NCBI RefSeq assembly: GCF_022045235.1
Contig: NW_027266297.1
Coordinates: 43,152,001 to 43,216,000 of the forward strand
DNA from: Haliotis cracherodii
Taxonomy: Eukaryota
Length of the DNA: 64,000 bases
Reading direction: 5' to 3'
Numbering within the stretch: position 1 is the stretch's first letter; each line of letters begins with the position of its first letter. The position numbers and the translations under genes are program-made. Positions 17,454-44,886 of the stretch are shown piece by piece. Under the pieces are notes generated by a model that was not told the origin of the DNA, ran no database searches, and saw only the letters and a program-made list of their open reading frames with translations.

Positions 17454-19557
17454 CCTATGTGTATTTCAAGACCTGTAAATTACTCTTGAAAACAATGAAT
17501 TGTATACTCTGTTTTGCCATCAAACACCCTTCTCCTATGTAAGTACTCCTGGGAGAGAATGCCAGCTAAATCGTGCCGAATGTCATTACACTGTAGCAAT
17601 GCAATCCAAATCGGTCCTAGGGTTTCGATGTGTTTGACTTTGCAACTGCTGCATTAAACCTGATGCCTGCCGCCCATTATGTCTTTTTTTAAAAGATGTT
17701 TTGTGTGATATCGGTATACAGTTCCCCTGTTGTCCAAGAATCCGTTACGCGATGACGTCATGAGCCCTTTAGCACTGAGTAATTTAGACTGGTTCCCCTT
17801 CCTTCCTGCGTTCTTTGGAAAGTTGAGCAAGAGCAGCGACACCAAGCGGAGGATCCGGAAACCAGTCTATGAGTAATTATATACGTCAACGCCAGAGAAT
17901 AACCAGTTTCGATTATCCATTGGTCGTAAAAGGCAAAAAGTACTGACGATGCCACCCAAAAGTCAATTCCCTAAATTTCGGAATGAGTACGGTTGAAATT
18001 ATTTATAATGTCTTATGATAGAATGAGACGATGTGGGAATTAAAAATACACCAGTCCTGTTTTTCAGTCAAGAAATTCAATTCAGCTTCATACCCCGACC
18101 AACGGTTATTCTATGGTTGACGATTGGTTAACGAGATTGATAAACTTGCAACTTTTCTCGAGCCTTAAGTCTCTTCTGTTATTCATAAGATATCACATTA
18201 TTTCCTGGCAAAATTCCCAACCCGTACCCACAACCGCACCCACACCCATAGAGCATCATTAAAAAAGGGAGCAGGAACAAAACCATTTCACAAGCAAGGA
18301 AATGAATGATTGATAAGTTTATCCCTTGATTAGGATCACAAGGTGGAAGTCATCAATTATAGTCGTCAACCTCTGATGGATCACCTGTGATTATAAAGTA
18401 TCTACATGTGCATGATCAGGAAAGATATATAAGAGTATTTCCATCAAATTTCATTGCGGAGTGCAGCAAATTAGTACAAACACGGATAGATTTTTGATTT
18501 GCTGCTTATCAGTTCTCTCAGCAATATTTCAGCTGTATGACGACGGCCTGTGCCAGTGATTAACATTGTGAGCTACGTCCCGCGCCTTAGGAGTGAGTTA
18601 GTTAAAAATTAGCGTCGCGTCGGCATTATTTGAGCCATATAGCGACCCACGCCGTAGGAGAACGATGGTCAAACAAGTCACCGAACCTGACCACCCGATA
18701 AATTTAGTCGCTTCTTACGACTGGTATAGCTGCTATGAACCTATTCTACCCTGGTATTGTCATGGGTGTACATCCCTAGAGAATCAGGTATATCCACGAT
18801 CAATTGTGTGGATCGATGCTCATGATGTCAATCACTGGATTATTTCCAGACCGTCGCCATACAGCTGGTATATTGCTGAGTGCGGCTTCAAACAACAAAC
18901 AAACAGCATCAGGTATACGTATAGTAATATGTTTCGCATAGTCACAATTATTGGATGACCCAAAATATTAAAGTAGGGACGGTTTCAACATCACGAGAGC
19001 AAACACGACTCATTTATCCTTTTAGCAGTATCATTTCTGATATCTTTAGTAGCATCGTTGAATTGCTCGACATAGTTTTCTATATCAACCATCATGTCCT
19101 ATGTCCAATGAGTTCCACAACGCAATTAAAGAAACGCATAAACGAAACATTGATTTATTTCATTTTTATTTCGAACTGAGTCACCAACGGGTCATCTGTA
19201 AAAGAAAATGGAAAGGTTTATTTATCATTTCACCACTGTTTCGAGTATTTGACTGACATCTAGTATGTGGCATATAGCTTGCTAAGCACTAACATTAGTA
19301 CATGCGGGCATGGTGGGGTGCATTGCTTCTGGTGATAAAAGCTTGTAGCTTTGTTTATTAGATTTCAATTGAACAGAAATCAGAACGGTAGCTCCATATC
19401 AGTATCCGAACATCTTTATCGTTGGTAATTATTACACATATATATCCTTCGCCATGAAATATCATGTAAACAGATCAAAGAATCATACATAAAAAAGGGA
19501 ATTACAAGAATACAAATCTCACCTTGAGAACAAATCGGAGGGGGTGGTCGCCCTCTT

Positions 19558-20868
19558 TCAAAGACCACTGGCACCTGGTCCTTTGCCTTCGGGAGGTGGT
19601 GGGCATCCGGTTGGTGGTGGAGGGCGATCACCTTCCTGTGGTGCTTGTCTGTGTGGACGGGATTCACCTTCTGGAGGGGGAGGACATCCGGTTGGTGGTG
19701 GAGGACGATCACCTTCCTGTGGTGCTTGTCTTCGTGGACGGGATTCACCTTCTGGAGGGGGAGGACATCCGGTTGGAGGTGGAGGGCGATCACCTTCCTG
19801 TGGTGCTTGTCTTCGTGGACGGAATTCACCTTCTGGAGGGGGAGGACATCCGGTTGGTGGTGGAGGGGGGTCACCTTCCTGTGGTGCTTGTCTGCGTGGA
19901 CGGGATTCGCCTTCTGGAGGGGGAGGACATCCGGTTGGTGGTGGAGGACGGTCACCTTCCTGTGGTGCTTGTCTGCGTGGACGGGATTCACCTTCTGGAG
20001 GGGGAGGACATCCGGTTGGAGGTGGAGGGCGATCACCTTCCTGTGGTGCTTGTCTTCGTGGACGGGATTCACCTTCTGGAGGGGGGGGACATCCGGTTGG
20101 AGGTGGAGGGCGATCACCTTCCTGTGGTGCTTGTCTTCGTGGACGGAATTCGCTTTCTGGAGGGGGAGGACATCCGGTTGGTGGTGGAGGGGGGTCACCT
20201 TCCTGTGGTGCTTGTCTGCGTGGTCGGGATTCACCTTCTGGAGGGGGAGGACATCCGGTTGGTGGTTGAGGGCGATCACCTTCCTGTGGTGCTTGTCTTC
20301 GTGGACGGAATTCGCCTTCTGGAGGGGGAGGACATCCGGTTGGTGGTGGAGGGGGGTCACCTTCCTGTGGTGCTTGTCTGCGTGGACGGGATTCACCTTC
20401 TGGAGGGGTGGGAGGACATCCGGTTGGTGGTGGAGGACGGTCACCTTCCTGTGGTGCTCGTCTGCGTGGTCGGAATTCACCTTCTGGAGGGGGAGGACAT
20501 CCGGTTGGTGGTGGAGGGGGGTCACCTTCCTGTGGTGCTTGTCTGCGTGGTCGGGATTCACCTTCTGGAGGTGGAGGACATCCGGTTGGTGGTGGAGGGC
20601 GATCACCTTCCTGTGGTGCTTGTCTGCGTGGTCGGGATTCACCTTCTGGAGGGGGAGGACATCCGGTTGGTGGTGGAGGGGGGTCACCTTCCTGTGGTGC
20701 TTGTCTGCGTGGACGGGATTCACCTTCTGGAGGGGGGGGACATCCGGTTGGTGGTGGAGGGCGATCACCTTCCTGTGGTGCTTGTCTCCGAAAGCGAGAT
20801 TCTAGAAGAGGATAAGACCAACATGAAGCGACACAAGAGAGCGCCAGTAGCAGCAAGAAAGTCTTCAT
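19558..20868 (-). CDS. Gene A: secreted Pro-rich, single-Cys repeat polyprotein (436 aa; signal peptide, short propeptide, 15 x 27-aa units)
   Basis: ATG at 20868 in a CACC-ATG context, TATAAA at 20906-20911, signal peptide MKTFLLLLALSCVASCWS, propeptide YPLLESRFRR, units QAPQEGD(R/P)PPPPTGCPPPPEGE(S/F)RPRR, uninterrupted frame. A 3'-UTR intron (19196-19522) precedes a terminal exon with AATAAA (~19165-19170). Confidence 0.9.
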   Translation of the reverse strand: MKTFLLLLALSCVASCWSYPLLESRFRRQAPQEGDRPPPPTGCPPPPEGESRPRRQAPQEGDPPPPPTGCPPPPEGESRPRRQAPQEGDRPPPPTGCPPPPEGESRPRRQAPQEGDPPPPPTGCPPPPEGEFRPRRRAPQEGDRPPPPTGCPPTPPEGESRPRRQAPQEGDPPPPPTGCPPPPEGEFRPRRQAPQEGDRPQPPTGCPPPPEGESRPRRQAPQEGDPPPPPTGCPPPPESEFRPRRQAPQEGDRPPPPTGCPPPPEGESRPRRQAPQEGDRPPPPTGCPPPPEGESRPRRQAPQEGDRPPPPTGCPPPPEGESRPRRQAPQEGDPPPPPTGCPPPPEGEFRPRRQAPQEGDRPPPPTGCPPPPEGESRPRRQAPQEGDRPPPPTGCPPPPEGESRPHRQAPQEGDRPPPPTGCPPPPEGKGPGASGL

Positions 20869-22035
20869 GGTGAGAGTGATACTGTTGTCTCGGTACAACA
20901 CATCTTTTATACACATCCAGTCCAAGCCAGATGGCTCATTATTAACTCGCAGGAATTACTATTTATTCTGCATGTTTCGTTCTATTGTCATCCAAATAGT
21001 TTTGCTGATTGAAGTGGAAATGTGACTGGAATATGAAAAGTTGATTACTTTTGTGATTAGGATCTTATCTTAAGAGACAAATATCGAAAGATGCCATTTC
21101 TTCTGTGACAGTACTGCATTCATCACTTTGATTGAAAATCAATATTTCCTTCCAAAATGAAAATACTTATTAAAAGCCACATGTGCCATATTTGAGGATA
21201 CATTACGAGCAATAATTTAGGCTGAGAACAGAACAGTATGCTGTATACATCTCATTAACTCAAATGCAACATCATCTCTTTCTTTACAAAAGTGAACATA
21301 ATGGCAATTTCATGTTGGCCGCCATCTTGTCTTTACCGATTTTCGTTCTGTGAGGTTAGTTTTAGTTCAGTTATGTCAGGTGCACCTATCTGGAAGTGAA
21401 GGTTTACGCTAGATAACGCTGTATACACTTTTTGCATGTTTAATCGTTGATGTAGAATTATGCTGTAAATCCCATAATGCAAACTGACTGACGCCTCCAA
21501 TTCTGTACAGACAGATAGGACTGATCACATGAAGTAACATTTTGGCTTCATTTGCGAATAATTTACGAACTGATATATCTATGTTCTCTGTTTAAAAGTT
21601 ATGAACAATTTTGACAATTCTTTAATGACATTTGACTTCAAGTAAATACACAGCCTAGTGATGCTAGTGATCTCAAATGAAATGAACCTTGCTGGCAGAA
21701 GAGAGAAATTGGCAGCAACCTACATCGAGAATATCCATATGCCGTTTTATCTGTTTTATGCAAAGATTAATGCAATGTTTTTCTTGGCTGAAAGGACAAC
21801 GACTTTTTAAAAAGTAATTCTCTTACAACTAGCACAATGAGGCTATGAACTTATTTTACCTGGACTCCATGAAAAGCTGTGTAATCAGAAACTAAACAGT
21901 TACAATCTGCGAGTAGCGCAAGAATATCACGAAAGTATGCACTGCATGGAGTTGCGCATTCACCAAGTTTCAGCACTTCCGCTTAGAAAAAATGAAAGAT
22001 TTGTTTGCATGAGAAAGTTGTTTGTACAATCGTCA

Positions 22036-22196
22036 TAGCGGTCGGTTGCGTATTGGTTAAAACATTTGTTCGTTACGCCGAAGGCCCGGGTTCGATTCCC
22101 CACGTGGGTAAATTGTGTTAAGCTCGTTCCTCTTGTCCTCCGCCGTGATTTTGCTGGAATATATTTCTAAAAGCTGTGTAAAACCATATTCACTCA
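22036..22196 (+). mobile_element. tRNA-derived SINE; related minus-strand copies at 48295-48460, 54680-54805 and 58640-58800
   Basis: tRNA-like head with B box GGGTTCGATTCCC and a CACTCA-type tail. Confidence 0.7.
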
Positions 22197-22299
22197 TGAT
22201 TTTATTGAAATACTTTTCGTTTTTCACAATTTTAAAAACTAAAACTCATCGTTCGTTGTTTAAACTCAATACTACAACGACAGCGTGCCTACACATCGC

Positions 22300-22558
22300 T
22301 GAATTTAGCCAGTGTCATTCTTATTACAATGACAGTCTCGCCTGAAACCTATGATTGTGGGTTCGAATCCCGTTTCGCCCCGATTATGTTTCTAGGTTTG
22401 TCAAGAACCATACCCATGCTCGTGGGTTTCACCAAAGTGTTACACGTCTGAGACCTGCATCACTTCGGACTTTCCTCCAACAATACACTGACACGCCGAT
22501 ATATAGCTGGAATATTATTCAAAGCGGCGTTAAATCAAACTCACTCACTCACTCACTC
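22300..22558 (+). mobile_element. SINE-like repeat with an (ACTC)n tail; related copies at 26405-26670, 31342-31514 and 49095-49310
   Basis: GGGTTCGAATCCCG...TTTCTAGGTTTGTCA...CTGAGACCTGCATCACTTCGG...AAAGCGGCGTTAAATCAAACTCACTCACTC. Confidence 0.7.
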
Positions 22559-25012: not shown

Positions 25013-25679
25013 CTATATATCCAATACAGGCGATGCAAGTCTATAATACTTGGCAAATCTAGATTACTTCAGTTTCAAAATACAAAATTCAGTGTGTAAG
25101 AAACAGTGACTGGGAATATTATTGTTGCCTACCATAAAACCAGGAATACAACAACTATGTGTCACAAGAATTCATTAATTTAGAATCCAGCGGGAATCCA
25201 GACCTAAATAGTTATCTTGTATCCCACGCTTGTCGAAAGAGCCGAGTTGATAGGAAGAGGCGATCAGACTTGATAAATGCTTGTGTGTCACCAGGCCCGA
25301 TATAGTGGATCGTTCCTCATGTTTCTAGCATGTCTGGTCCAGGCTTGATTATCTGGAACATCACTAAAAGCGGCGTTAAACAACATTCACTCGCTGACAG
25401 TTTATACAACAGGTAACAACAGCTGTTTTTTAAATGCACCCATTTGTTAGCATTTGTGTTCAATATTTTTAACGATTTTTCTTGTTAATTTCTATCTCAA
25501 AGATACACCTTACGGTGTGTAATAAGATATGTACACGCCGTGATGCCTTCTGCAGTTTCGTATATCGTCCTATTCAAAATATAATGTACATAATCTCTTT
25601 CGCTCTTTGTCCGGTTGAGGATAGTTATATCATATGTATCTTAAAATGGAGATTCACGTTTTAATCACCGACAATATTT

Positions 25680-25804
25680 CAATGACAATGCAAAGAATCA
25701 CGCAACCCGTACTGGTAATTACTGCTAGTAATGATGTGCCATCTGGCTTGGACTTGAAGTGTATAAAAGCAATGCTGTCCCGAGACATGAGCATCACTTT
25801 CATC
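25680..25804 (+). promoter_or_regulatory. Conserved core promoter of the repeat-gene family (gene B copy); paralogous copies at 20869-20995(-), 30000-30125, 38104-38230(-) and 42314-42440
   Basis: Shared block (C)CATCTGG(C/T)TTGGACTNGA(A/T)GTGTATAAAAG, then an Inr-like TCACT just before the ATG. TATA at 25762-25767, E-box CATCTG at 25740-25745. Confidence 0.75.
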
Positions 25805-26308
25805 ATGAAGACGTTCCTGGTACTGCTGGCGCTCTCCTTTGTGGCCACATGTTGGTCTCAAGCACAACAGGACGGAGACCGCCCACTACCACCAACCGGA
25901 TGTCCTCCACCTCCAGAAGGTGAATCCCGACCACGCAGACAAGCACGACAAGAAGGTGACCACCCACCTCCACCAACCGGATGCCCTCCCCCACCTGAAG
26001 GTCAATCTGGCCCAAAGGAACAAGCACAGGAAGGCGACCGCCCTCCTCCACCAACCGGATGTCCTCCCCCTCCAGAAGGTAGAGAACAATCCCGACCACG
26101 CAGACAAGCACAACAGGAAGGTGACCGCCCACCACCAACGACTGGAAGTTCTCTCCTACCTGAAGGTCAATCTGGCCCACAAGGACAAGCACCACAGGAA
26201 GGTGACCGCCCACCTCCACCAACTGGATGCCCTCCACCTTCAGAAGGTAAAAGGCAAGGTGCTAGAGGTCCTGGAGGAAGAAGGCCACCTCCTCCACGCA
26301 GGAACTAA
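25805..26308 (+). CDS. Gene B: secreted Pro-rich Cys repeat protein, paralog of A (167 aa, 5 units plus a basic tail)
   Basis: Signal peptide MKTFLVLLALSFVATCWS, TATA 43 nt upstream, units ending alternately in SRPRR and SGPKE/SGPQG, tail KRQGARGPGGRRPPPPRRN. 3'-UTR intron 26321-26904, AATAAA at 26928-26933. Confidence 0.9.
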   Translation: MKTFLVLLALSFVATCWSQAQQDGDRPLPPTGCPPPPEGESRPRRQARQEGDHPPPPTGCPPPPEGQSGPKEQAQEGDRPPPPTGCPPPPEGREQSRPRRQAQQEGDRPPPTTGSSLLPEGQSGPQGQAPQEGDRPPPPTGCPPPSEGKRQGARGPGGRRPPPPRRN

Positions 26309-29300
26309 CCGATACTCACGGTGAGCTTCTTATATTTTTAACAGAATGATTCTTTTTTCTGTTTACAGAACATTTAAATGCAAAGAATATATGTACACGT
26401 AATAGTGAGTCGGTGAGTAAGGGTTAAACGCCGCTTTTAACAGTATTCCAGTTATATCTCGGCGTGTCAGCTTAATGTGGGAGGAAAAATGCAGGTCTCA
26501 GACGTTTCCCACTTCAGTGAAACCCATGAGCACGGGTATGGTGCTGACAAACCTAGAAACATAATTGGGGCGAACCGGTATTCGAACCCACAATAATAGG
26601 TTTCTGCCATGCCAAAGGGATGCAACTCTGCACAGCGAATCGCGGTGCCTCAGACGACTGGGCCACCCGTGATAAGGATGTTCAGATACTGGTATTGATC
26701 GAGCTACATTTCAGATTTGCCTTCAAGTTGTATCTAATAAAAACTAATAATTTTTTTTATTGAAGCCGCTTTCGTCACACGCAGTAATATATGATCATGG
26801 TTTCACGTTGAATACATAGGGCATTGCAAAATGATTCCTGTATGTTATATATTACATGTATGTTGGAAACTGTATTGTAATGTTAATCTGCCTTTCTTTT
26901 ACAGATGACTCCTTCATAATAGATCGCAATAAAAAAATCAAATCTTTCGTTATGAATTTGTTTCATTAAGTTGGGACATATTCGTTTGTACTCTGAATAT
27001 GCGACATATTGTCCCCAGAACTCTCTTGCTTGGTTGATCGCTTGTCAACGTACCCCGATGGCGTGTGGCGTTGCTCGTGTTTTCAGCTGTTTGTCTGTCG
27101 GTGACACCCTAGTATCAAGGCCGAAATGAGACAGTTCGATCATAGCTCGACGTTTTCCTTCCCAATGACTTCCATGGCACGGACGCCTGAGTCAGTAGAG
27201 CTGCCCAGAACTTCCATGAAGGCGATTAAGTTAAATAATGTTCCTCCGTTGGTCCAATCTTGTGAATGTCTTGATGACGTGGCTGATTTGATTGAGTGTC
27301 ATCGTAGGGCGTTTCTCATGCTTCGTTCAGTTGTTGTCTGTCTGTCTCTGGCTATCTGTTTTGAGGCAGCCATGAGATAGTTTGAATACTGTTGCAAGTG
27401 TTCATTCACTCGGACACTCCCATCTGAAGAAATGTCTTGGTTCACAACTGACACGTGCTGTCTCCGGGGAGTTAGCTCTAAGAGGAAATGAAGGGCAACA
27501 ACATTGGCATCGCGGTTCCAGACAATTTAGTACAATGCATATAAATAGTCAAACAACAAATACACAATAAGTGGATTACCTGCTCTGACATCACAAACAC
27601 AACAATAAGCGGTTTTCCAGCTCAAACATCCACGTCAACCACAACGTGGGTTTTTTCGAAGAACACTTGCCTTAAGGTATTGTACAGTTAGCGTTCTAGC
27701 AATCGGCTAACTGTCAGGGACGTACAGTCGATTACTCTGTCCAGAATTTAGCATCACAAGTATATTGAACACATTGACAACAATATAACATACTTAGTCA
27801 GGTGATAAAGCACCGATCCTCATTACCTGACCCTACCTGAGGGGCCATAATGTTGGGAATACCCTCATTTGTCATGATTAATTATCTAGACTTTTTGTCA
27901 CTTCTGCATTTTAGAAGTCTGTGAATGAGTGGAGTAGGATTTACAGCATCAGTCTTTATTTCCACATTTAAAACTCGGTTAACCCTGTACGGTAAAGAAT
28001 TACCTCAAAATTGACATATTTACGTTCACTGAAAGTGACTCTAACATCAAAAGTGACTCTAACATCAAAAGGCACTCAAGAAGGTGACCAACACAGAACT
28101 TCTATCACTTCTTTAAACTTAAGTACAGCAAAATATTAATTGAGATCTATATTGCATAATCCTTACCCTTGGATACAGTTGGTGAACTTTCTCTTATGTT
28201 GTGATTGTGACCTACACATGTCAGCAAAGGGGTCCTCCCATTTGTCAGACACCCACTTGTCAGACAGTGGAATATATTTTAAATGCCACACACCCATTTA
28301 CTCATAATGATATGACCCAGGCACTTGCAATCTCTTTGAAGTTTTAAACGACTTGGTTAAACAGTAAATATGTTTGTTTTCACGAAAGTTTGCTAGATGG
28401 TGCTTAGTGCTTGTTTTTACAAGTGAGTTCAATAGACTTCGTTAACATAACCAGTTTGTTTTCGCAAGTGAGTACCCCAATTAAAAGTAAACTGTGATCC
28501 CTTTGAAGTGTTTGTACTTCATATGTTACTGTTTCACACTTTCTTGTCACTGATATGTTTAAAGAGTAGATCTGTTAGTCTCACAACTAAGTTCTTTGGA
28601 GTTGTTTTTACTGAAATTAGTATCAATATTATATAAGACATATGATCAGAAGAATCACGCCTCACATTGACAATGGCAAGTCCATGATGACACATGGGGA
28701 AGCGACCACCCTCCTACACTTACCTACATAGGTAGTCCACCCCAATTAGAGGAACAGCTAAATCTTCAATCCACAATGGACTATGCAAAGGCTGATTGGC
28801 CCAAATTTAGGAAGGAATTTATATCATTTAAATCCAAAAAATCAAAACGGTCTGTCCGTTTCAAAAGGGAAAGATGCTATGATACCCAGTCTCTCCATAA
28901 AAGGAAAAGCACTAAAATTCTATACAATTCAAAGGTATACAAAATTCAGGAAAGTCTTCATGGTGATCATGAGAGTCAAGTTTATGACTCTTCCATCTTG
29001 TCTACCACTTTTAGTGTTCGACACACATTCGATGAAAAGGGGTTTATCTAATTTGAAGTAACTTTTTAAGGTAGGTAAAGGCTGTTTTTTGTATAGAAAT
29101 CTAGAATAGTGCTGGAAATCACAGCGCACACATTGGCAGATTTTTCCAACGCAGTAGTGACACATTGAACTGATGAACCACATGGTAGAACGGTAGTGTA
29201 TGGTAGGGTCCAGTGATGAGGATCGGATGGTTTGTGATCTGATCACATGAAGTAGGTTATATTTCCCGACGACGTGGATCGGTGCTGGTGCTCTAAACAC

Positions 29301-30125
29301 TGGTGTGATTGGATTACTTACTCATGCACTCACTCTCCAGTTTGCAGATATCTGGAATAAGTTGTCTGCATAAACTGTCTGAAACATGATCCAGGAATAG
29401 GAATAGAAAGACTGATGTCAAAACGTTTTGATTGTCCTCCATACAGTACGAATGCCATCAAAACAACTTGATATACAGACACGCGCTCTACGCTTCTCTA
29501 AGAGATATAGGTAGTGCTGATAATTCAACTGAAAATTAGAGAATGTATAAACTCGATGATTGTTACATCAAAGTCATCTGGACCAAACAAGCCAGTGGTA
29601 TTCATCAGGTTGAACTGGCGGTGAAACTCGGGACGTGAGTCTAAACTTCTTTCATATATTCAGGGACGGTGAGATAAAATTATGTCAATCGATCCCTCGG
29701 GACATATGTTGTGTTGTACCCTGTGTGTGAGCCTATGTACCCCTCGCCTGAGACACGGGGTAGATCACACAATATACCCCTCGATCGGTTGACAACTTAT
29801 AGTGTTCCAGCTATCTGACGGCCGCCTTGAAATAATCGTGACAAGTTCAAACAAACCAACAGCTAGCTATATTCCAGTTATATGCGGGCGGTCTGTAAAT
29901 ATTCGAGTCTGGATCAGGCAATCCAGTGATTGATATTACTAGCAAAGTCAGAGTACAGGGACATATAACCAAGTCACCCAACATGATCATCCGAGCAACT
30001 GACAATACAAAGAGTCACGCAACACCGTAATGTAATAATCACTGCGAGGTAATGATGTACCCTCTGGCTTGAACTGGAAGTGTATAAAAGCAGTGCTGTC
30101 CCGAGACATGTGCATCACTTTCACC

Positions 30126-30656
30126 ATGAAGACATTGCTGATACTACTTGCGCTCTCCTTTGTTGCCACATGTTGGTCTCAAGCACCACAGGAAGGTGAC
30201 CGACCGCCTCCACCAACCGGATGCCCTCCCCCTTCAGAAGGTGAATCCCGACAGCGCAGACAAGCAGGACAAGAAGGTGACGGCCTACCTCCACCAACCA
30301 CATACCCTGCCCATCCTGAAGGTCGATCTGGCCCACAGGAACAAGAACCACAGGAAGGTGACCGTGCTCCTCCACCAACCGGATGCCCTCCCCCTCCTGA
30401 AGGTGAATCTGGCCCACAGGAACAAGAACCACAGGAAGGTGACCGTGCTCCTCCACCAACCGGATGCTCCCCCCCTCCTGAAGGTCGATCTGGCCCACAG
30501 GAACAAGAACCACAGGAAGGTGACCGTGCTCCTCCACCAACCGGATGCCCTCCCCCTCCTGAAGGTGAATCTGGCCCACGGGAACAAGCAACACAGGACG
30601 GTGACCGTCCTCCTCCACCAACCGGAGGTCTAATGAGTATGAAACACCGATTATAG
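30126..30656 (+). CDS. Gene C: paralog of A/B (176 aa as read), 3'-truncated by a foreign segment; may be a pseudogene
   Basis: MKTLLILLALSFVATCWS plus 5.5 units. Homology stops abruptly at 30626 (...PPPPTG) and the last codons (GLMSMKHRL) come from unrelated DNA. TATA at 30083-30088; the E-box reads CCTCTG. Confidence 0.7.
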   Translation: MKTLLILLALSFVATCWSQAPQEGDRPPPPTGCPPPSEGESRQRRQAGQEGDGLPPPTTYPAHPEGRSGPQEQEPQEGDRAPPPTGCPPPPEGESGPQEQEPQEGDRAPPPTGCSPPPEGRSGPQEQEPQEGDRAPPPTGCPPPPEGESGPREQATQDGDRPPPPTGGLMSMKHRL

Positions 30657-31341
30657 ACCCAAAGCTGAGTGATTTGCAATTTTAACACTTAAACAAGGCA
30701 TTTGAAGGCGTTGTGCAATATAGGGGAATGCCCTCGCTAAAAATAGGTCAGTGACGCTACACTCTGTACATACAACATGAAGTAGAAATATCTCTACAGT
30801 TCTGTACTTTTCAATGATATGAGAAAGGGAACAATTGTTTTAAGGTTACACCCTAACTGTATCAAATAAAAGGACTATTTATCGAGGTTGGAGGGGTTTT
30901 AGATTTACATTAATAATACAGCTTTAGTCAAGCAGGACATTTTGTACTATGTCACTTTACTATCAGGTCGGCTAGCGAGACATGGACAGGTCCCAGCAAT
31001 GTAAGCAAGCCTATCGCTGTCAACACAATGTCTATAATAACTAGGTCACCTTATTATGCTGGACTGCATACCAACGCAAGGTCTCAGCTGAACATGTTGA
31101 TACATGTTTATTCACCTGTATAGACTTGTTGGATGGGTTTAATAGTAGAGGGGACTTTTATTAGTAGCGGCGTTAGGTATGATTTAGATCGCATACTGTT
31201 CAGTAACCTGTAACCCCTTTCTTTACCTTCATAGGCAAGGTAGCGTTTTTCAAAGGGAGCGTGTATTGAACAGGGAAGTGAACTCTTCTTATTGAATGTA
31301 ATAAAGATAGACAGCTTTTCAGTATGCTATCAGTCAAGGAG

Positions 31342-31514
31342 TGAGGGAGTGAGTTGGGTTTAACGCCGCTTTTAACAGTATTCCAGTTATATCGAGGCGT
31401 GTCTTAATGTGGGAGGAAAGCCCGAAGTGATGCAGGTCTCAGACGTTAACCACTTCGGTGAAACCCACGAGCACGAGGTATGGTGCTGACAGACGACTGG
31501 GCCACCCATGCCCC
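31342..31514 (-). mobile_element. SINE insertion with a 15-bp target-site duplication
   Basis: CTATCAGTCAAGGAG occurs at 31327-31341 and again at 31515-31529, flanking a SINE of the 22300 family. Confidence 0.8.
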
Positions 31515-32196
31515 CTATCAGTCAAGGAGCGATGGTTAAGCAGAACGGACGTGTTTGAGTATAATTGTTGTTAACAATAAATGTACACATCGCTAAAAGC
31601 ATTGGAACACAGTGTCTCCTATCAGTCAGCGCGCGACCCTCGGAGAGAGTGGACGTGTTTGAAAGTCGTCTGTGAATCTTTTCAAGTACAGATTATCTCA
31701 CGACCTAAGGTAATAGTTGAAAGTTGAATAAAACTTAAGAAATAAAATATTCCTTTCACTAACTCAATGTTATTGTATATAAATATAGTGCCTAATGACT
31801 TTAAACATCAAGAAAACAATTTTAAAGAAACAATGATAAATTTTCCCTACATATCATGAGGATATTATTAAGAGAATATGAAAAGTTTTAATTTCATTAC
31901 TTGTAGGATAGAAGAGAAACAGAAACATGAAATCCCTCTCAGACTTGGAGACATGGGCTATGAGTCACAACTGTACGAGTGATCCAGATGTAAATCTAAA
32001 AAGAATTGAGTTACTAGCTAACCATGTCGGTATCATAAAAAACGTATGCAAGGTCGTAGTTAACTTTTTTTTACAAGAAGGGGGCGGGGGGGGGGGGGGG
32101 GGGGGCAAATATTTGTACAAGTATCACTTGTCCCCAACTTGTATTTTCATGATTCAAATAAAACTGTTTTCTATAATTACCCCCGACTGGCTACGG

Positions 32197-34940: not shown

Positions 34941-35546
34941 GACACCATTTCATATCTAGTCTTTTGTGTGTGATGTATTATGATTCAGCAGTGTTAGACT
35001 GACACATGTTGTATTGTAAATACAAGATTATATATTATGTGAATATGAATGCTACATTACAGATGTAATTACCTGAGTTGTTGTCTTTAAGGGTTCAATG
35101 TTAATCTTTATTTATTATGTATATTATTTTGCACTTATATATGTCTTTTGTACAGATGTGTTGAATGATTAAGCACACATATATGTATTGTGTCCATTGT
35201 ATGTGTAATTATTGCTATGAATACATAATGTTGAATAAATATGTTAAATATATCAATTGCGTTTGTGAATATTTTATGGAACTTCAACTCAAATAGTTAT
35301 GTTAACTGGAGAGTACACAATTAATAATAGTGTGATGTGGTTAGACCCACGTGGTAACAGAATAATGACACTGACTGATTCGCGTTAGTACACTTTTGAC
35401 AAACTACAGGTAAATTCAAATAAAATGCTGAAATATGGCAGACTGTCCTCTCGTCAAAAGAACAAACAATTAGTATATTCTATACACATGTTTTTATTGC
35501 ACATAAATATACCCAAAACATAACAATACAGTTACAGAATAGTGTT

Positions 35547-36231
35547 TTAATGTACAAGAGTTAAATGATTATCAAACACCAACAACAACATCATCATTAT
35601 CTTGGTCATCATCAGATTGGTTGACAAGTTCACTTCATCCAGTGACAAGTCCACATGAGAGAGGATATCTTTGACCACTGGTTTCATCCACTGAGTGATT
35701 TTATGATCCATTTCATTGCTATCCATGTCAGGATCTAACTGTTTCATTTTCTCCAGAATAGGTTTGAAGAGTGATCCATTTCCAAAGTAGCCAGTATATC
35801 TGATGGCTCTCACAAGTCTTTCAAGGAAAGTAGTTTTCCAGCATTTCTTTAATTTCTTTTCAACCCATCTCTCACTCTTTCCTTCATCTTCATACAGTTC
35901 TTTCTTTTCCCAGATCTCTTCCTTGCAAGTTTTTAGTGTTTGTTCCCACATGTATTCCAGTCCTTTGACTTCCCTCTCTTTATCAGCTTCATTAGGTTTA
36001 TGTGTTGTGTCTACTGGATTCAGAATATTCTGTGGTATCTATTTAGCTCGTTTCTTCAAGGGTTGCCATTCATTCTCTGGGCACCAGGGTCCCGTTCCAC
36101 AAAGCGATCTTAGTGCTACGATTGTCTTAAGTGTTAAAGAATGGGAGTTACGACCGACTCAGGTTCTCTCATGACGTTGAAGGTCATGATTGTTTTCAAA
36201 CATGATACCACACTCGTCACAGGAAGTCATG
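35547..36231 (-). pseudogene. Disrupted accessory ORF of the Polinton-like segment (C2H2-like N-terminus plus charged helical region)
   Basis: MTSCDECGIMFENNHDLQRHERT, a short insertion, WCPENEWQPLKKRAK*, then EYMWEQTLKTCKEEIWEKKELY. Convergent with PolB. Confidence 0.5.
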
Positions 36232-36455
36232 GTCTCGTCTTCTGACTCCACAGTTCTCTCAGTTGTGTACTCTAACCTATAGGTTCAGTCTCTGGTATTA
36301 ACGGTTGACTCGTGTTAGACGACCTCTCAAATACAGACTTGTTCTCATTCGAGCTCAATGTTGCTATAGGCCTAATTGGGTCTGACACGAATAATATATA
36401 AGACTGTAACCTGTTTGATTCCAGCGTAATAGGACGTAAGTCAATAGTTAGATTT

Positions 36456-38103
36456 CATCCGGTTGGTGGTGGAGGGCCGTCACCTTCCTGTGGTACTTGT
36501 CTGCGTGGGCAAGATTCACCTTCTGAAGGGGGAGGACATCCGGTTGGTGGTGGAGGGCGATCACCTTCCTGTGGTACTTGTCTGCGGGGGCAGGATTCAC
36601 CTTCAGGAGGGGGTAGACATCCGGTTGGTGGCGGTCACCTTCGTGTTGTGCTTGTCTGCGGTTTTCACCTTCGGGAGCTGGAGGATATCCGGTTGGTGGT
36701 AAAAGGTGGTCACCTTCCTGTGGTACTTGTCTGTGTGGGCAGGATTCACCTTCGGGAGGTGGAGGACATCCGGTTGGTGGTGGAGGGCCGTCACATAACT
36801 GTTGTGTTTGTCTTCGTGGACGGAATTCACCTTCTGGAGGGAGAGGACATCCGGTTGGGGGTGGAGGGACGTCACCTTCCTGTGGTGTTTGTCCTCGTGG
36901 ACGGGATTCGCCTTCTGGAGGGGGAGGACATCCGGTTGGTGTTGGAGGGCGGTCACCTTCCTGTTGTATTTGTCCACGTGGGCGGGATTCACCTTCGGGA
37001 GGGGGTGGACATCCGGTTGGTCCCGGTCATCTTCGTGTTGTGCTTGTCTGCGTGAGCGGGATTCACTTTCTGGAGGGGGAGGACATCCGGTTGGTGTTGG
37101 AGGGCAGTCACCTTCCTGTTGTACTTCTCTGTGTGGGCAGGATTCACCTTCTTGAGGAGGACATCCGGTTGAGGTCGGAGGGCCGTCACCTTCCTGTGGT
37201 GCTAAGTACATACAAACCAACAGCATAGCGACATGTGAATAGCATAACTTTTGAGCTTGGAACTCTGGCTTACTCGCTTATTCTGCTAACTACGTAATGT
37301 CTCGCATGAATTAGTGATATTGCACGAGTTCGCTGTTAGCGGTATTAGTTTGTTGTTGTAGGCCGACATATTCCAGCTATATGGCGGTGGTCTGTACATA
37401 TTCGAGTCTGGATCAGGCAATCCAGTGATTGATATTACTAGCAAAGTCCCCCGCCATCAGAGCACGGTGACATATAATCAAACAAGTCACCGAACATGAC
37501 CATCCGATCCAATTTAATCGACTCTTACGAGTAGCAATACAATTCTTAGCACATGTCACGGAGTTTGATGTGGGAGGAAAGCTGGAAATGGTGCAGATCT
37601 TAGACGTTTATTATTTTCGTGATTCCTCGAAAACACCGATAGTCCTGACATCTATAATCATTATTCATTCACCTTCGGGAGGTGGAGGACATCCGGTTGG
37701 TGGTGGAGGGCCGTCACATATTGTTATGTTTGTCCTCGTGGACGGGATTCACCTTCTGGAGGGGGGGGGGGGGGGGGGGTGAGGGCACATCCGGTTGTGG
37801 GTGGAGGGACCTCACTTGCCTGTGGTGCTTGTCCTTTTACTGTCACCTTCCTGTTGTATTTGTCTGCGTGGGCAGGATTCACCTTCTGAGGGGGATACAT
37901 CGGGTTGGGGGTGGAGGGCCGTCACCTTCCTGTGGTGCTTCGCCGTGGACGGGATTCACCTTCACGAGGGGGAGGACATCCGGTTGAAGGGGGAGGGCCG
38001 TCACCTGACTGTGGTTCTTGTCTGCGTGGGCGTACTTCTAGAAGAGGATAAGACCAACATGTGGCAGCACAAGAGAGCGCCAGAGCGCCAGGAAAGTCTT
38101 CAT
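36456..38103 (-). pseudogene. Gene D: pseudogene of the gene-A subtype
   Basis: ATG AAG ACT TTC CTG at 38103 with a 1-nt frameshift in the signal peptide, propeptide WSYPLLEVRPRR as in A, degenerate frameshifted units, an interruption at ~37205-37665 and truncation at 36456. TATA at 38141-38146. Confidence 0.85.
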
Positions 38104-39811
38104 GATGAGAATGAGGCTGCTGTCTCGGCACATCATATCTTTTATACACTTCCAGTCCAAACCAGATGGCTCATCGTTAACGCACATTATTTGCTACGGA
38201 GCATGCCTGTTTCGTTGCATTGCCATTGAAATAGATTTCGTGATTAATAATGTGACTCACTTTAAATTGAAAATACAGAGTGTTGATTTATGTCTTATTT
38301 GGTCCTTTTAGAGAACAAATAGCGAAAGAGGCCATGTGTTCTGCGAATTACTGCATTCAACCTTTTAATTGAAAAGATAATATTGCCTTTCAAAGTACAA
38401 ACACTAATTAAAACGCCATATGTGCCTCTTTGAAAGGGGACCAAATTGTACGCAGTATCCATTTCAAAGTAATTGCTCAAGGTAGCTGGCGTTAGGTGTT
38501 GTACAGCCTTTGGACATAGTTTCATCACAGGAGTAGAATTCTTCTGTACAAATTGTCAGACTTCCCCAATGATGCAGTGACAGCTAGAACTTGTCATACT
38601 ATTGGAAATAAGCTGGTTTAGCAGAGGTACCGCTGTACACGACCAACCCACACAACAACACAAGACCTGAGTGAATCAACAGTCAGTTTATAAGACAGTC
38701 ACAGAATCTTATATATAATCAGTCAAATAGAAATGTTTACAATCAATATTTAGAGCATGTTTTTTGACAATCCGTTATAGAAGTACATATATGTTAAGAA
38801 CACCAGGTGAACATGATATAGAATCATTACACAAGATACATGCTACATTAGTAGTACATATTCCAAGGTACACAACGTACCACAGTTTACATGTGATTGA
38901 ATCTGGTGTACCCGATATACTCTAAGTAATGTATTACCCGAGTGGGCTTTCAATCACGATACATACAGTTCAGCTACAATACATATTCCAAAAGGTAAAC
39001 AGCGTAATACAGTTAACAGAATAGGCATAATCCTTACACAAAAGTAGTACAATGGGAATATCTAAGATATACACACACGTTACAGTTACCAATTACACTT
39101 GCAGGTAGTGCCAAGGGTAATAGCATACACTTAAGATTTAACATAGTACAACATTGCAACGTTTCTTACCTGTGTGAATAAAGAGTTAGTTTATTAGACA
39201 GCAACAGAACGATTTGTGACTGTCTGTCGTCCGTATTCATACCTATTCTAGATACTACAGATAATCTCTTTTACTGATTAAACTGACGTTGTTATTGGGA
39301 ATTTTAGTGGCGATATCTAGACAGAATTATATAATTAAGTTCGACCGAGGCATTAATGGTAAAGGTGTTTATGATTGAAGTTTAGTCAGAATAACTGTTT
39401 ACCTGTTGCTAGTATGCCACGAATGTACACGTGGTACGGGTGATTTGATAAGGGTGGATGATAAACAACTGTAGACACAGATAAAGATATTAATGTCTTA
39501 CATTTGTTTGCCTAACTCTGTCTGACCCATGAGAGATGCTGGTCCTGTCCGACATGGGTTATCGGGTTGACCCTTGGCAGTCTAAAGATGATGGAACGTG
39601 ATCGTTTGTTGTAATATTACCTTATTTCACAATTTCCAACTCTTAATGTGTGGCATTTAGAGTGATAAAATATTTGTCAAACTTTGTCCATTTCCCCAAG
39701 TTAATAATACAATGGCGAACGCGTGCATGAGATTAACAGAATGTACATCGCCTCTGAAAAAACATTGGGCCTCATATAATTTATTGATTTAAGAAGAATT
39801 TATAAACTGAT

Positions 39812-41905
39812 CCTAGGCTGTGCAGTAATTTCTTACAACGACAATGTGCAGACACACTGCTGATATTAGCCATTGTCATAGGCTGTGCAGTAATTTCTTA
39901 CAACGACAATGTGCCGACACACTGCTGATATAAAAGCGACTGTCCTAGGCTGTGCAGTAATTTCTTACAACGACAATGTGTCGACACACTGCTGATATAA
40001 GCCATTGTCATAGGCTGTGCATAATTTCTTACAACGACAATGTGCCGACACAATGATGATATAGGCCACTGTCCTAGGCTGTGCAGTAATTTCTTACAAC
40101 AACGATGTGCAGACACACTGATGATATAAGCCATTGTCATAGGCTGTGCAGTAATTCTTACAACGACAATGTGCAGAAACACTGCTGATATAAGCCATTG
40201 TCATAGGCTGTGCAGTATTTTCTTACAACGACAATGTGCCGACACACTGCTGATATAAGCCACTGTCATAGGCTGTGCAGTAATTTCTTACAACGACAAT
40301 GTGCCGACACACTGCTGATATAAGCCATTGTCACAGGCTGTGCAGTATTTTCTTACAACGACAATGTGCAGACACACTGCTGATATAAGCCACTGTCATA
40401 GGTTGTGCAGTAATTTCTTACAACGACAATGTGTCGACACACTGCTGATATAAGCCACTATAACAGGCTGTGCAGTAATTTCTTACAATGACAATGTGCC
40501 GACACACTGCTGATATAAGCCATTGTCATAGGCTGTGCAGTAATTCTTACAACGACAATGTGCAGAAACACTGCTGATATAAGCCACTGTCATAGGCTGT
40601 GCAGTATTTTCTTACAACGACAATGTGCCGACACATTGCTGATATAAGCCACTGTCATAGGTTGTGCAGTAATTTCTTACAACGACAATGTGCCGACACA
40701 CTGCTGATATAAGCCATTGTCACAGGCTGTGCAGTATTTTCTTACAACGACAATGTGCAGACACACTGCTGATATAAGCCACTGTCATAGGTTGTGCAGT
40801 AATTTCTTACAACGACAATGTGTCGACACACTGCTGATATAAGCCACTATAACAGGCTGTGCAGTAATTTCTTACAATGACAATGTGCAGACACACTGCT
40901 GATATAAGCCACTGTCATAGGCTGTGCAGTATTTTCTTACAATGACAATGTGCAGACACACTGTTGATATAAGCCATTGTCATAGACTGTGCAGTAATTT
41001 CTTACAACGACAATGTGCCGACACACTGCTGATATAAGCCACTGTCCTAGGCTGTGCAGTAATTTCTTACAATGACAATGTGTCGACACACTGCTGATAT
41101 AAGCCATTGTCATAGGCTGTGCAGTATTTTCTTACAACGACAATGTGCCGACACACTGCTGATATAAGCCATTGTCATAGGTTTGCAGTATTTTCTTACA
41201 ACGACAATGTGCCGACACACTGCTGATATAAGCCATTGTCATAGGCTGTGCAGTAATTTCTTACAACGACAATGTGCAGACACATTGCTGATATAAGCCA
41301 CTGTCCTAGGCTGTGCAGTAATTTCTTACAACGACAATGTGCCGACACACTGCTGATATAAGCCACTGTCAAAGGATGTGCAGTATTTTCTTACAACGAC
41401 AATGTGTCGACACACTGCTGATATAAGCGACTGTCATAGAATGTGCAGTATTTTCTTACAACGACAATGTGCAGACACAATGATGATATAAGCCATTGTC
41501 ATAGGCTTTGCAGTAATTTCTTACAACGACAATGTGCCGACACACTGCTGATATAAGCCATTGTCACAGGCTGTGCAGTATTTTCTTACAACGACAATGT
41601 GCAGACACACTGCTGATATAAGCTATTGTCATAGGCTGTGCAGTATTTTCTTACAACGACAATGTGTAGACACACTGCTGATATAAGCCATTGTCACAGG
41701 CTGTGCAGTATTTTCTTACAACGACAATGTGCCGACACACTGCTGATATAAGCCACTGTCATAGGCTGTGCAGTATTTTCTTACAACGACAATGTGCCGA
41801 CACATTGCTGATATAAGCCACCGTCATAGGCTGTGCAGTAATTTCTTACAACAACAATGTGCCCACACACTGCTGATATAAGCCACTGTCAAAGGATGTG
41901 CAGCA
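39812..41905. repeat. 65-bp tandem repeat GGCTGTGCAGTA(A/T)TTTCTTACAACGACAATGTGC(C/A)GACACACTGCTGATATAAGCCA(T/C)TGTCATA, about 32 copies
   Basis: Direct tandem repetition with period 65 (e.g. 40271 and 40336). Confidence 0.95.
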
Positions 41906-42440
41906 ACACACACAATTGAATCCAGCAGGAATCCTGTATCCCGTGCTTGTCGTCAGAGCCGAGTATAGAGGAACAGGTGGCCAGGTTCGGTAACTGATTG
42001 TGTGTCATTGAGACTGATAGCGTGAATTGTTGCTCATTTTATCAGTCATTGGTTTGTCTGGTCCAGGCTTGATTATGTACAGACCGCCGTGGTATAGCCT
42101 GGAACATCGCGGAGTTAAACAACAGTCACTCGCTGATTATTAAGTAACAGCAGCTCCATCAGATGTAATTTGGAATATATTCTCGTCAATTTCTTATCTC
42201 CTTAAGGCGTGTAATAAGCTATGTACACGTCAATTGTGCTGTTCAAATTACATTATCTCTTTCGTTCATTGAGCCTTAAATTGAAGCGTCACGTTTTAAT
42301 CATCGAAACTGTTTCAATGACAATGCAAAGAGTCACGCAACACCGATTGGTAATTACTGCGAGGTAATGATGTGCCATCTGGCTTGGACTTGAAGTGTAT
42401 AAAAGCTGTGCTGTGCCGAGACATGAGTATCACTTTCACC

Positions 42441-44537
42441 ATGAAGACGTTCCTGGTACTGCTGGCGCTCGCCTTTGTTGCCACATGTTGGTCGCAAACA
42501 CCTCAGAGTGAAGGCAAGCGCCCACTATCAACAACGAAACCGTCACCCCCTATAGAAGGTCAATCTGGTCCCGAAAGTCAAAGAGGCGAAGGACCACAAA
42601 GTCAAAGCGGTGAAGGACCCCAAAGAGGTGAAGGATCCCAAAGAGGCGAAGGACCCCAAAGAGGTGAAGGATCCCAAAGAGGTGAAGGATCCCAAAGAGA
42701 CGATGGACCCCAAAGTCAAAGAGGTGAAGGACCCCAAATAGGTGAAGGATCCCAAAGAGGCGAAGGACCCGAAAGTCAAAGAGGTGAAGGACCCCAAAGA
42801 GGTGAAGGATCCCAAAGAGGCGAAGGACCCCAAAGAGGTGAAGGACCCCAAAGAGGCGAAGGACCCCAAAGAGGTGAAGGACCCCAAAGGGGTGAAGGAT
42901 CCCAAAGAGGCGAAGGACCCCAAAGAGGTGAAGGATCCCAAAGAGGCGAAGGACCCCAAAGAGGTGAAGGACCCCAAAGGGGTGAAGGATCCCAAAGAGG
43001 CGAAGGACCCCAAAGTCAAAGAGGTGAAGGACCCCAAAGAAGTGAAGGATCCCAAAGAGGCGAAGGACCCCAAAGTCAAAGAGGTGAAGGACCCCAAAGA
43101 AGTGAAGGATCCCAAAGAGACGATGGACCCCAAAGTCAAATAGGTGAAGGATCCCAAAGAGGCGAAGGACCCCAAAGAGGTGAAGAACCCCAAAGAGGTG
43201 AAGGATCCCAAAGAGACGATGGACCCCAAAGTCAAAGAGGTGAAGGACCCCAAATAGGTGAAGGATCCCAAAGAGGCGAAGGACCCGAAAGTCAAAGAGG
43301 TGAAGGACCCCAAAGAGGTGAAGGATCCCAAAGAGGCGAAGGACCCCAAAGAGGTGAAGGACCCCAAAGGGGTGAAGGATCCCAAAGAGGCGAAGGACCC
43401 CAAAGTCAAAGAGGTGAAGGACCCCAAAGAAGTGAAGGATCCCAAAGAGGCGAAGGACCCCAAAGTCAAAGAGGTGAAGGACCCCAAAGTCAAAGAGGCG
43501 AAGGACCCCAAAGTCAAAGAGGCGAAGGACCCCAAAGTCAAAGAGGTGAGGGACCCCAAAGTCAAAGAGGCGAAGGACCCCAAAGAAGTGAAGGATCCCA
43601 AAGAGGCGAAGGACCCCAAAGTCAAAGAGGTGAAGGACCCCAAAGTCAAAGAGGGGAAGGACCCCAAAGTCAAAGAGGCGAAGGACCTAAAAGTCAAAGA
43701 GGCGAAGGCCCCCAAAGTCAAAGAGGTGAGGGACCCCAAAGTCAAAGAGGTGAGGGACCCCAAAGTCAAAGAGGTGAAGGACCCCAAAGTCAAAGAGGTG
43801 AGGGACCCCAAAGTCAAAGAGGCGAAGGACCCCAAAGTCAAAGAGGGGAAGGACCCCAAAGTCAAAGAGGTGAGGGACCCCAAAGTCAAAGAGGTGAGGG
43901 ACCCCAAAGTCAAAGAGGTGAGGGACCCCAAAGTCAAAGAGGTGAGGGACTTCAAAGTCAAAGAGGCGAAGGACCCCAAAGTCAAAGAGGGGAAGGACCC
44001 CAAAGTCAAAGAGGTGAGGGACCCCAAAGTCAAAGAGGTGAAGGACCCCAAAGTCAAAGAGGTGAAGGACCCCAAAGTCAAAGAGGTGAGGGACTTCAAA
44101 GTCAAAGAGGCGAAGGACCCCAAAGTCAAAGAGGGGAAGGACCCCAAAGTCAAAGAGGTGAGGGACCCCAAAGTCAAAGAGGTGAAGGACCCCAAAGTCA
44201 AAGAGGTGAAGGACCCCAAAGTCAAAGAGGCGAAGGACCCCAAAGTCAAAGAGGGGAAGGACCCCAAAGTCAAAGAGGTGAGGGACTTCAAAGTCAAAGA
44301 GGCGAAGGACCCCAAAGTCAAAGAGGTGAGGGACCCCAAAGTCAAAGAGGTGAGGGACCCCAAAGTCAAAGAGGTGAGGGACCCCAAAGTCAAAGAGGTG
44401 AGGGACTTCAAAGTCAAAGAGGCGAAGGACCCCAAAGTCAAAGAGGGGAAGGACCCCAAAGTCAAAGAGGTGAGGGACCCCAAAGTCAAAGAGGTGAGGG
44501 ACCCCAAAGTCAAAGAGGTGAAGGACCCGAACTTTGA
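42441..44537 (+). CDS. Gene E: secreted Gly/Gln/Glu/Arg/Pro/Ser repeat protein (698 aa) with the family's promoter and signal peptide but a different repeat
   Basis: MKTFLVLLALAFVATCWS, one degenerate ancestral unit (QTPQSEGKRPLSTTKPSPPIEGQSGPE), then ~650 aa of QRGEG(P/S) hexamers and QSQRGEG(P/L) octamers in an unbroken frame. TATA at 42398-42403, AATAAA at 44605-44610 and 44614-44619. Confidence 0.9.
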   Translation: MKTFLVLLALAFVATCWSQTPQSEGKRPLSTTKPSPPIEGQSGPESQRGEGPQSQSGEGPQRGEGSQRGEGPQRGEGSQRGEGSQRDDGPQSQRGEGPQIGEGSQRGEGPESQRGEGPQRGEGSQRGEGPQRGEGPQRGEGPQRGEGPQRGEGSQRGEGPQRGEGSQRGEGPQRGEGPQRGEGSQRGEGPQSQRGEGPQRSEGSQRGEGPQSQRGEGPQRSEGSQRDDGPQSQIGEGSQRGEGPQRGEEPQRGEGSQRDDGPQSQRGEGPQIGEGSQRGEGPESQRGEGPQRGEGSQRGEGPQRGEGPQRGEGSQRGEGPQSQRGEGPQRSEGSQRGEGPQSQRGEGPQSQRGEGPQSQRGEGPQSQRGEGPQSQRGEGPQRSEGSQRGEGPQSQRGEGPQSQRGEGPQSQRGEGPKSQRGEGPQSQRGEGPQSQRGEGPQSQRGEGPQSQRGEGPQSQRGEGPQSQRGEGPQSQRGEGPQSQRGEGPQSQRGEGPQSQRGEGLQSQRGEGPQSQRGEGPQSQRGEGPQSQRGEGPQSQRGEGPQSQRGEGLQSQRGEGPQSQRGEGPQSQRGEGPQSQRGEGPQSQRGEGPQSQRGEGPQSQRGEGPQSQRGEGLQSQRGEGPQSQRGEGPQSQRGEGPQSQRGEGPQSQRGEGLQSQRGEGPQSQRGEGPQSQRGEGPQSQRGEGPQSQRGEGPEL

Positions 44538-44886
44538 ACACTCTTTAAAACGAATTACTGTCGTAACGAAGGTTATCACTTCAGGTGACACTTCTTGTTA
44601 ATGAAATAAAACTAATAAATACTGAACGATTTTGTTATGCATATGTCTTGCACGCGTGGGTTTGCAATAGAAATGCGTGACGCTGTATTACTAAGTGTAT
44701 GAGAAACGACACATCGCGGGTCCCCCCCCCCCCCCCCCCCCCAAGCCGCAATGCCACGATATGAGTGATTCATTGTTCAGAGCTGAGTTAATTCACTCAC
44801 TTAAGGGGCCAATTCTAGCGGTGGGAAGCGACTAAATGGACCGGCTGGCCAGACTCGGTGACTTGATTGATTGGTGTCATCGGACG

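Follow-up and report, generated by a model that had tools for sequence, protein, structure and literature searches.

An apparently lineage-restricted family of predicted secreted repeat proteins in the abalone Haliotis cracherodii

Apidaecin precursors of the honeybee (PF00807) consist of a signal peptide and tandem Pro-rich peptides with basic processing sites, in copy numbers that vary among paralogs, and conotoxins join a conserved signal region to a variable mature region. Mammalian salivary proline-rich proteins (PRPs) are encoded by clustered paralogs, some of them truncated variants, whose secreted, disordered Pro/Gly/Gln-rich products contain 3.5 to 15 copies of a 20-21-residue repeat; proprotein convertases cleave each precursor to yield several peptides (PMC3235478). 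Among molluscs, the mussel myticalin and MgCRP-I families are described as clustered and as pairing a conserved signal (pre-pro) region with a hypervariable mature region (PMC5577615; PMC4558851). Abalone mantle and shell contain secreted low-complexity Pro-rich or Gly-rich repeat proteins without homologues, and molluscan shell-matrix repeat proteins are fast-evolving, lineage-confined and organized in multigene families (PMC2034539; PMC6003135). Here we describe a family of predicted secreted repeat proteins in the abalone Haliotis cracherodii, five loci of which (A to E) lie within a 64,000-nucleotide (nt) stretch of contig NW_027266297.1 (assembly GCF_022045235.1, positions 43,152,001 to 43,216,000, forward strand). 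We refer to this stretch as the window, and its coordinates are used below unless a contig is named. These loci very probably belong to a real family of secreted repeat-protein genes, and we have moderate confidence in the fuller interpretation of a lineage-restricted, secreted and disordered repeat family with cleavage of the A product and a role in extracellular material.

The ATG codons of the five loci were found exactly where the original prediction had placed them, at 20868 (A, - strand), 25805 (B, +), 30126 (C, +), 38103 (D, -) and 42441 (E, +). That prediction had also proposed a common 5' block leading into a near-identical signal peptide, and alignment of the five 5' regions bore this out. 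The regions align from about -160 to +54, no alignment is possible beyond about -160, and the sequence GTGTATAAAAG is invariant in the 5' block of all five loci. The TATA box, TATAAAAG, has its first T 43 nt before the ATG at 5/5 loci, and an initiator (Inr)-like TCAC(T/C) sits about 10 nt before the ATG, so placed that the two motifs form a plausible, putative core promoter with a leader of about 10 nt. By alignment and pattern matching, the upstream block spans 20869..21030 (-) in A, with the first T of the TATA box at 20911, an Inr-like TCACTC and the same putative promoter and leader of about 10 nt; 25645..25804 (+) in B, with the TATA box at 25762; 30003..30125 (+) in C, with the TATA box at 30083; and 42281..42440 (+) in E, with the TATA box at 42398. 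The 5' module of D extends over 38050..38260 (-), with the TATA box at 38146, and contains a 1-nt deletion inside the signal peptide; its frame stops after 21 codons.

The predicted signal peptides are 18 residues long (MKTFLLLLALSCVASCWS in A, MKTFLVLLALSFVATCWS in B, MKTLLILLALSFVATCWS in C and MKTFLVLLALAFVATCWS in E), and the Cys at -3 and the Ser at -1, both small, are compatible with a signal-peptide cleavage site; we infer that the signal peptide directs the family's proteins into the secretory pathway. Across A, B, E and F8, a member of the family on another contig, identity is 0.81 from -100 to -44, 0.83 from -43 to -1 and 0.85 over the signal peptide, and it drops to 0.44 in the 55 nt just past it. 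The mature N-terminal Gln of B, C and E probably cyclizes. An in-frame ATG also occurs six codons ahead of the main one (MSITFT-MKTF...) in B (25787), C (30108), E (42423) and the genes on the other contig, whereas A and D lack it. As its position is upstream of the expected start site, it probably falls outside the transcript.

Behind this 5' end the products differ in their repeats. The coding sequence (CDS) of A (19558..20868, -) specifies 436 amino acids (aa): the signal peptide, a YPLLESRFRR propeptide and 15 units of 27 aa, with 15 Cys, 14 RxRR sites and 37% Pro. The unit reads QAPQEGD[RP]PPPPTGCPPPPEGE[SF]RPRR and has a single Cys between two PPPP runs; Tandem Repeats Finder described the array as 14.8 copies of an 81-nt period with 93% matches. 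With RFRR past the signal peptide and 14 RxRR between units, all 15 units are bounded by sites, and the predicted peptide between sites has 25 residues, a pI of 4.41 and one Cys. B (25805..26308, +) encodes 167 aa comprising the signal peptide, five Pro/Cys units whose linkers alternate RPRR with GPKE/GPQG, a GKR site and a tail ending RRPPPPRRN. The open reading frame (ORF) of C (30126..30656, +; 176 aa) holds 5.5 units and ends GGLMSMKHRL*. Its homology breaks off mid-unit, and the tail, intron and poly(A) module expected downstream were not found there, so we regard C as truncated. ORFs resembling those of transposable elements lie between C and D (31927-35951), one with a C2H2 zinc-finger-like motif and three without a Pfam match; these elements may have caused the truncation. 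D retains decayed, frameshifted Pro/Cys arrays at 36456-37200 and 37867-38019 (span 36456..38019, -), the former 84% identical to the A array.

E (42441..44537, +) encodes 698 aa: the signal peptide, one decayed, Cys-free Pro/Cys unit and about 650 aa of QRGEGPQS-type repeats of 6-8 residues, mostly the octapeptide GEGPQSQR. Its payload had been taken for an unrelated repeat of about 650 aa; this holds for the bulk of the array but not for the whole, since the first unit is recognizably a decayed Pro/Cys unit. Homology of E to the Pro/Cys unit is confined to that first unit, and local DNA alignments of the E repeats, or of those of the second contig, with the Pro/Cys unit scored no better than codon-shuffled controls (z -0.3 to -2.9). 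The remaining predicted payloads (15, 5 and 5.5 units in A, B and C, and decayed arrays in D) were confirmed. ORFs and 3' ends likewise agree with the reported state of the copies, namely three intact (A, B and E), one truncated (C) and one pseudogene (D).

The 3' ends are conserved as well. A, B and the genes on the second contig have in common a C-terminal tail, a GT donor that follows the stop by 3-35 nt, a putative intron of 327-584 nt in the 3' untranslated region (UTR), an acceptor of the form (T)nCAG|ATG(A/G)C and, within about 25 nt of it, AATAAA. In A the putative intron (19196..19522, -) runs from a donor AAG|GTGAG 35 nt past the stop to the acceptor TTTTACAG|ATGAC; homology with the intron and terminal exon of B extends over three blocks, and the putative terminal exon (19150..19195, -) has AATAAA at 19170 and 19159. 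In B the putative intron (26321..26904, +) begins 12 nt past the stop and includes a short interspersed element (SINE) at about 26405-26640, and AATAAA stands at 26928 in the putative terminal exon (26905..26940, +). E has lost the intron from its 3'UTR (44538..44620, +) and keeps remnants of both junctions, with AATAAA at 44605 and 44614; its terminal exon is homologous to that of the genes on the second contig. No 3' module was found downstream of C or D, which confirms the truncation of the one and the decay of the other. An expressed gene needs its stop near the last junction to escape nonsense-mediated decay; the stop here always lies <50 nt from the presumed last junction, which is what such a gene would need. 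The original prediction had described a fixed 5' secretion cassette, and the conserved 5' end stands, but a free-standing cassette does not, because the 3' ends are homologous too: the common tail, 3'UTR intron and poly(A) exon point to whole-gene duplicates with internal turnover of the array. The SINE in the putative B intron is tRNA-derived, and related copies occur in the intron of every gene examined on the second contig, where insertions are likewise found; within the window, copies lie at 26405-26640, 22344-22557, 31340-31494, 48301-48461, 49094-49309, 54683-54770 and 58848-58951.

When all of the genome (1.18 Gb in 80 contigs) was searched with the cassette, the family came to 16 loci on three contigs, so that the window holds a cluster of five paralogs, as proposed, but not the entire family. 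Two further cassette queries of the whole genome returned zero loci beyond the 16, an exact-pattern search recovered 14/16, and reading frames are intact in 11/16. BLAST E-values between copies range from 1e-29 to 1e-104, a similarity far past chance. The largest branch of the family is a head-to-tail array of eight intact tandem genes (F1-F8) 4-8 kb apart on contig C13 (C13:7476861-7522940, genes at 7.477-7.521 Mb), which have almost identical 5' cassettes and differ in array length. Three dispersed relics of the C13-type cassette, at C45:24298282, C45:7174921 and C34:12805890 (together called G, H and I), are all dead; the lesions among them are a stop codon that closes the frame after 37 codons, a missing TATA box and ATG, and a 1-nt insertion. 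In a tree of the cassettes, B, C and E form one well-supported clade, A and D a second, and F1-F8 with G, H and I a third. Between A and B and between D and E, the intergenic sequence is collinear at either end, which points to duplication of a head-to-head pair, and A-B and D-E look like its two copies. A 65-nt satellite (32 copies at 91% identity, 39806-41903) occupies the middle of the D-E intergenic region and is absent from the A-B region.

The C13 genes encode proteins of 556-868 aa with open frames in 8/8, built of GPGGPE and GPGGQERQ blocks and all terminating in RPTPPQQRN. They contain 45% Gly and 24% Pro, have a pI of about 4.4 and lack Cys. The family thus carries three payload types: Pro/Cys 27-mers (A, B, C and D), GEGPQSQR octapeptides (E) and GPGGPE/GPGGQERQ blocks (C13). 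The near-identity of the eight C13 genes suggests selection for dosage, as in other bulk secretory products, and the cluster probably encodes a high-dosage secretory product. With 82-140 GPGG motifs and short Gly-X-Y runs (longest 8-9 triplets, interrupted by RQ), these proteins resemble spider flagelliform silk and collagen; unlike spidroins, they lack a terminal domain of that type, and unlike collagens, they have no match to Pfam Collagen.

Sequence variation points to coding constraint on the arrays in the signal-peptide frame. We cut array units by position and compared their nonsynonymous (pN) and synonymous (pS) differences. Among the A units, pS was 0.138 and pN 0.023 in the signal-peptide frame, a ratio of 0.17 (0.17-0.19); the other sense frames gave 0.8 and 6.9, and two of the three antisense frames tested gave 1.0-6.8. 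For 38 units of E the ratio was 0.05 in the signal-peptide frame versus 7.2 and 1.4 in the others, and over the tests of A and E the other sense frames ranged from 0.8 to 8.9. The comparison of B with C yielded a ratio of 0.50 in frame, compared with about 1.2-1.3 out of frame, and between clades the signal peptide differed with a pS of 0.38 and a pN of 0.09. The Arg codons of RPRR in A vary synonymously (CGT/CGA, CGC/CGA), and the defective copies C, D, G, H and I show the decay expected once constraint is lost.

We propose that each gene would consist of one coding exon, with TATA/Inr, a leader of about 10 nt, the 18-residue signal peptide, the array and a short tail, with the 3'UTR intron and the small poly(A) exon behind it. 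On this reading, the family grew by whole-gene tandem duplication, including that of the head-to-head pair (A-B, D-E), and both gene ends stayed conserved as the arrays expanded, contracted and were replaced through slippage and unequal exchange. A furin-type convertase acting at the 14 RxRR sites would release from the A product about 15 acidic peptides of 25 residues, which begin with Gln and bear one Cys each between two polyproline runs, with dimers or cross-links possible. The furin consensus is R-X-(K/R)-R. RPRR followed by Gln fits this consensus, such sites delimit each of the 15 units, and the changes seen in their Arg codons are synonymous; on these grounds, processing of A into acidic 25-mers is a reasonable, if not quite a favored, expectation from the sequence. 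From B and C, where sites are fewer, the pieces would be longer and contain more than one Cys. The likeliest role in our view, put forward more tentatively, is that of bulk extracellular material (an elastic or disulfide-cross-linkable matrix, coating or secretion) from a specialized secretory epithelium.

Several observations weigh against this interpretation. The antisense frame of A that has its wobble positions in common with the sense frame scores 0.20, as well as the sense frame itself, so that orientation rests on the ATG, signal peptide, TATA box and poly(A) signals. Variable sites in A are few (1, 5 and 8 at codon positions 1, 2 and 3), and its units cannot be counted as independent. 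In the A array every one of the six frames is open, as are most frames of the other arrays; since stop-free units keep frames open, long ORFs alone prove nothing. An upstream non-coding exon is possible, as an AG stands 16 nt ahead of the ATG. Nor is processing a family trait, since C has few RxRR sites and E and the C13 genes have none. Ser/Thr, Tyr, Cys and Asp are missing from the F proteins, a composition that fits neither mucins, 3,4-dihydroxyphenylalanine (DOPA) adhesives nor classical Asp-rich shell proteins. Finally, six family motifs were absent from 28 supplementary files of the shell proteome of the greenlip abalone, Haliotis laevigata, which is another species of the genus in a setting where repeats evolve fast.

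In design, the closest analogue that we found is the mammalian salivary PRP cluster (PRH1/2, PRB1-4). Like PRPs, the abalone genes are clustered paralogs with variable repeat number and convertase sites (in A, 37% Pro, 15 repeats and 14 RxRR), a likeness by analogy only. Unlike PRP genes, which have several exons, they appear to have the whole CDS in one exon, and their Pro/Cys units are acidic, with one Cys flanked by PPPP runs. Searches with A and B recovered neither a PRP nor any other named eukaryotic protein, and homology to mammalian PRH/PRB was accordingly rejected. In having a conserved signal, a variable remainder and a clustered multigene family, they also resemble conotoxins, myticalins and MgCRP-I; those products are short, cationic or Cys-knotted, whereas the abalone proteins are tandem arrays that diverged by replacement of repeats, not by point substitution.

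The original prediction recognized no named family, and every search for relatives left that judgment standing. Pfam returned no family for A at E<=0.01 or E<=10 and none for F8 at E<=10. In a library of 5.8 billion proteins, A had no match, E matched only low-complexity tails of unrelated enzymes, and F8 matched only collagen-like PF01391 proteins, weakly and by composition. An exhaustive phmmer search of 1.84 billion representatives with B gave one marginal, unrelated repeat protein. The PDB held no match for A and only a marginal one for F8, to the collagen-like region of BclA, and ten family peptide motifs, sought as substrings across 8.4 million papers, were not matched. Membership in collagen (PF01391) was rejected for F8 on the lack of a Pfam match, the Gly-X-Y runs of <=8-9 triplets and the weak, compositional nature of the matches, and spidroin or flagelliform silk because F8 has no Pfam domain and the GPGG motif alone in common. 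FITZAP (abalone sperm sp6), a polyampholytic protein of about 6 kDa with an N-terminal poly-Asp region and two exons (PMC6952181), was rejected as the identity of E, since that description suits neither E nor the rest of the family: no member has poly-Asp, and the proteins span 167-868 aa. On these sequence comparisons, the family appears to be an orphan, lineage-restricted one of a kind familiar in molluscs.

One alternative is that A, and partly B, is a multi-copy precursor of a bioactive peptide (a hormone, pheromone, defence or venom-like peptide) whose array amplifies dose, the other members being by-products of duplication. This would account for the RFRR/RxRR sites around all 15 A units, for the synonymous variation of their Arg codons and for the GKR site in B, a classical cleavage/amidation signal. 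The nearest language-model neighbor of A was moreover the apidaecin polyprotein cluster, at 0.85, a lead only and under the 0.9 lead threshold. As in apidaecin precursors, the signal peptide of A is followed by peptide copies bounded by basic sites, a likeness of design and not of homology. However, apidaecins are cationic 18-20-mers without Cys, and the predicted A peptide is an acidic 25-mer (pI 4.41) with one Cys, unlike cationic Pro-rich antimicrobial peptides; with no PF00807 match even at E<=10, membership in the apidaecins was rejected. The sites are also lost in most C units and absent from E and the F genes, and eight near-identical, site-less F genes suggest bulk material. We therefore consider such a precursor unlikely, and prefer an extracellular material.

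That the products are instead repetitive low-complexity proteins of the mantle shell matrix, like shematrins of the pearl oyster or Has-vm2 and Has-tsfgr1 of the tropical abalone, is quite unlikely. The architecture of signal peptide, repeat domain and short conserved C-terminal motif is the same, and secreted repeat proteins that are rich in Pro or in Gly and lack homologues are indeed expressed in abalone mantle (PMC2034539; PMC6003135). But the repeat motifs differ, and none of the six family motifs (0/6) occurs in the 28 files of the congeneric shell proteome. The acidity of the family comes from Glu, not Asp, and the conserved Leu, Ile, Val and Ser of the Has-vm2 repeats (PMC2034539) are missing from the units described here. 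That the arrays are non-coding minisatellites, open for want of stop codons and preceded by a dispersed repeat or the remnant of a dead gene, is very improbable. Every frame of the A array and the majority of those of the other arrays do yield long ORFs, as a 31-nt satellite in the same window does spuriously. But differences within A, within E and between B and C fall mainly at synonymous positions when read in the signal-peptide frame; three clades have kept the ATG, signal peptide, tail, donor, acceptor and poly(A) signal; unit length is always divisible by three; and broken copies visibly decay.

If expressed, the family would be a compact natural case of an animal building new secreted materials or peptides. 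Its ends keep the apparent regulatory, secretion and mRNA-processing signals and the array can be replaced outright, giving three unrelated payloads in one family. For abalone, it would add an undescribed, probably abundant secretory product, and for materials work a set of sequence-simple polymers (polyproline-Cys rods, GPGG elastomer-like chains and an Arg/Glu polyampholyte). Orphan repeat genes of this kind are easily overlooked, as the libraries searched contained no matching protein and lacked even the products of these genes. A more speculative idea, which we regard as a long shot, is that A, B and C form a valency-coded set in which the number of RxRR linkers fixes how many polyproline-Cys-polyproline modules each piece retains once a convertase has acted (one Cys per piece in A, two in B and up to four in C) and so yields disulfide-assembled rods, chains or networks whose length can be tuned, or else that the single-Cys 25-mer is a new dimeric signaling or defence peptide; E and the C13 proteins would then be Cys-free polyampholyte or elastomer phases of the same secretion.

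Among the surroundings of the cluster, exons of GET3/ASNA1 (ArsA_ATPase, PF02374) lie at about 52892-60644 (-); this was the only copy found in the genome and would serve well as a synteny anchor. A PARP-like neighboring gene had also been proposed. The PARP catalytic domain was not matched within the window, and the nearest match lies about 55 kb upstream of it on the minus strand (C34:43097086-43097268), so that 8000-18000 may contain no more than the 5' exons of that gene, or else a different gene. The 31-nt satellite forms a 3.3-kb block (4473-7834) with a 93-nt super-unit and a strong purine skew on the + strand. It has stops on the + strand and ORFs of up to 325 aa on the - strand (CQYLLIPLL...); since a 31-nt period is not divisible by three, these ORFs are probably spurious. 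A GC-rich run of long ORFs at 1-3200 (-) has a retroelement-like look, and Pfam was negative for the one ORF tested. On contig C7, four exon matches to Egg_lysin (PF01303), all above the family cut-off, fall within about 60 kb (C7:25190671-25249396). To our knowledge, this sperm-lysin family is limited to abalone and close vetigastropod relatives, so the matches support placing the genome among the vetigastropods (abalone); the four may represent the lysin and sp18 gene pair.

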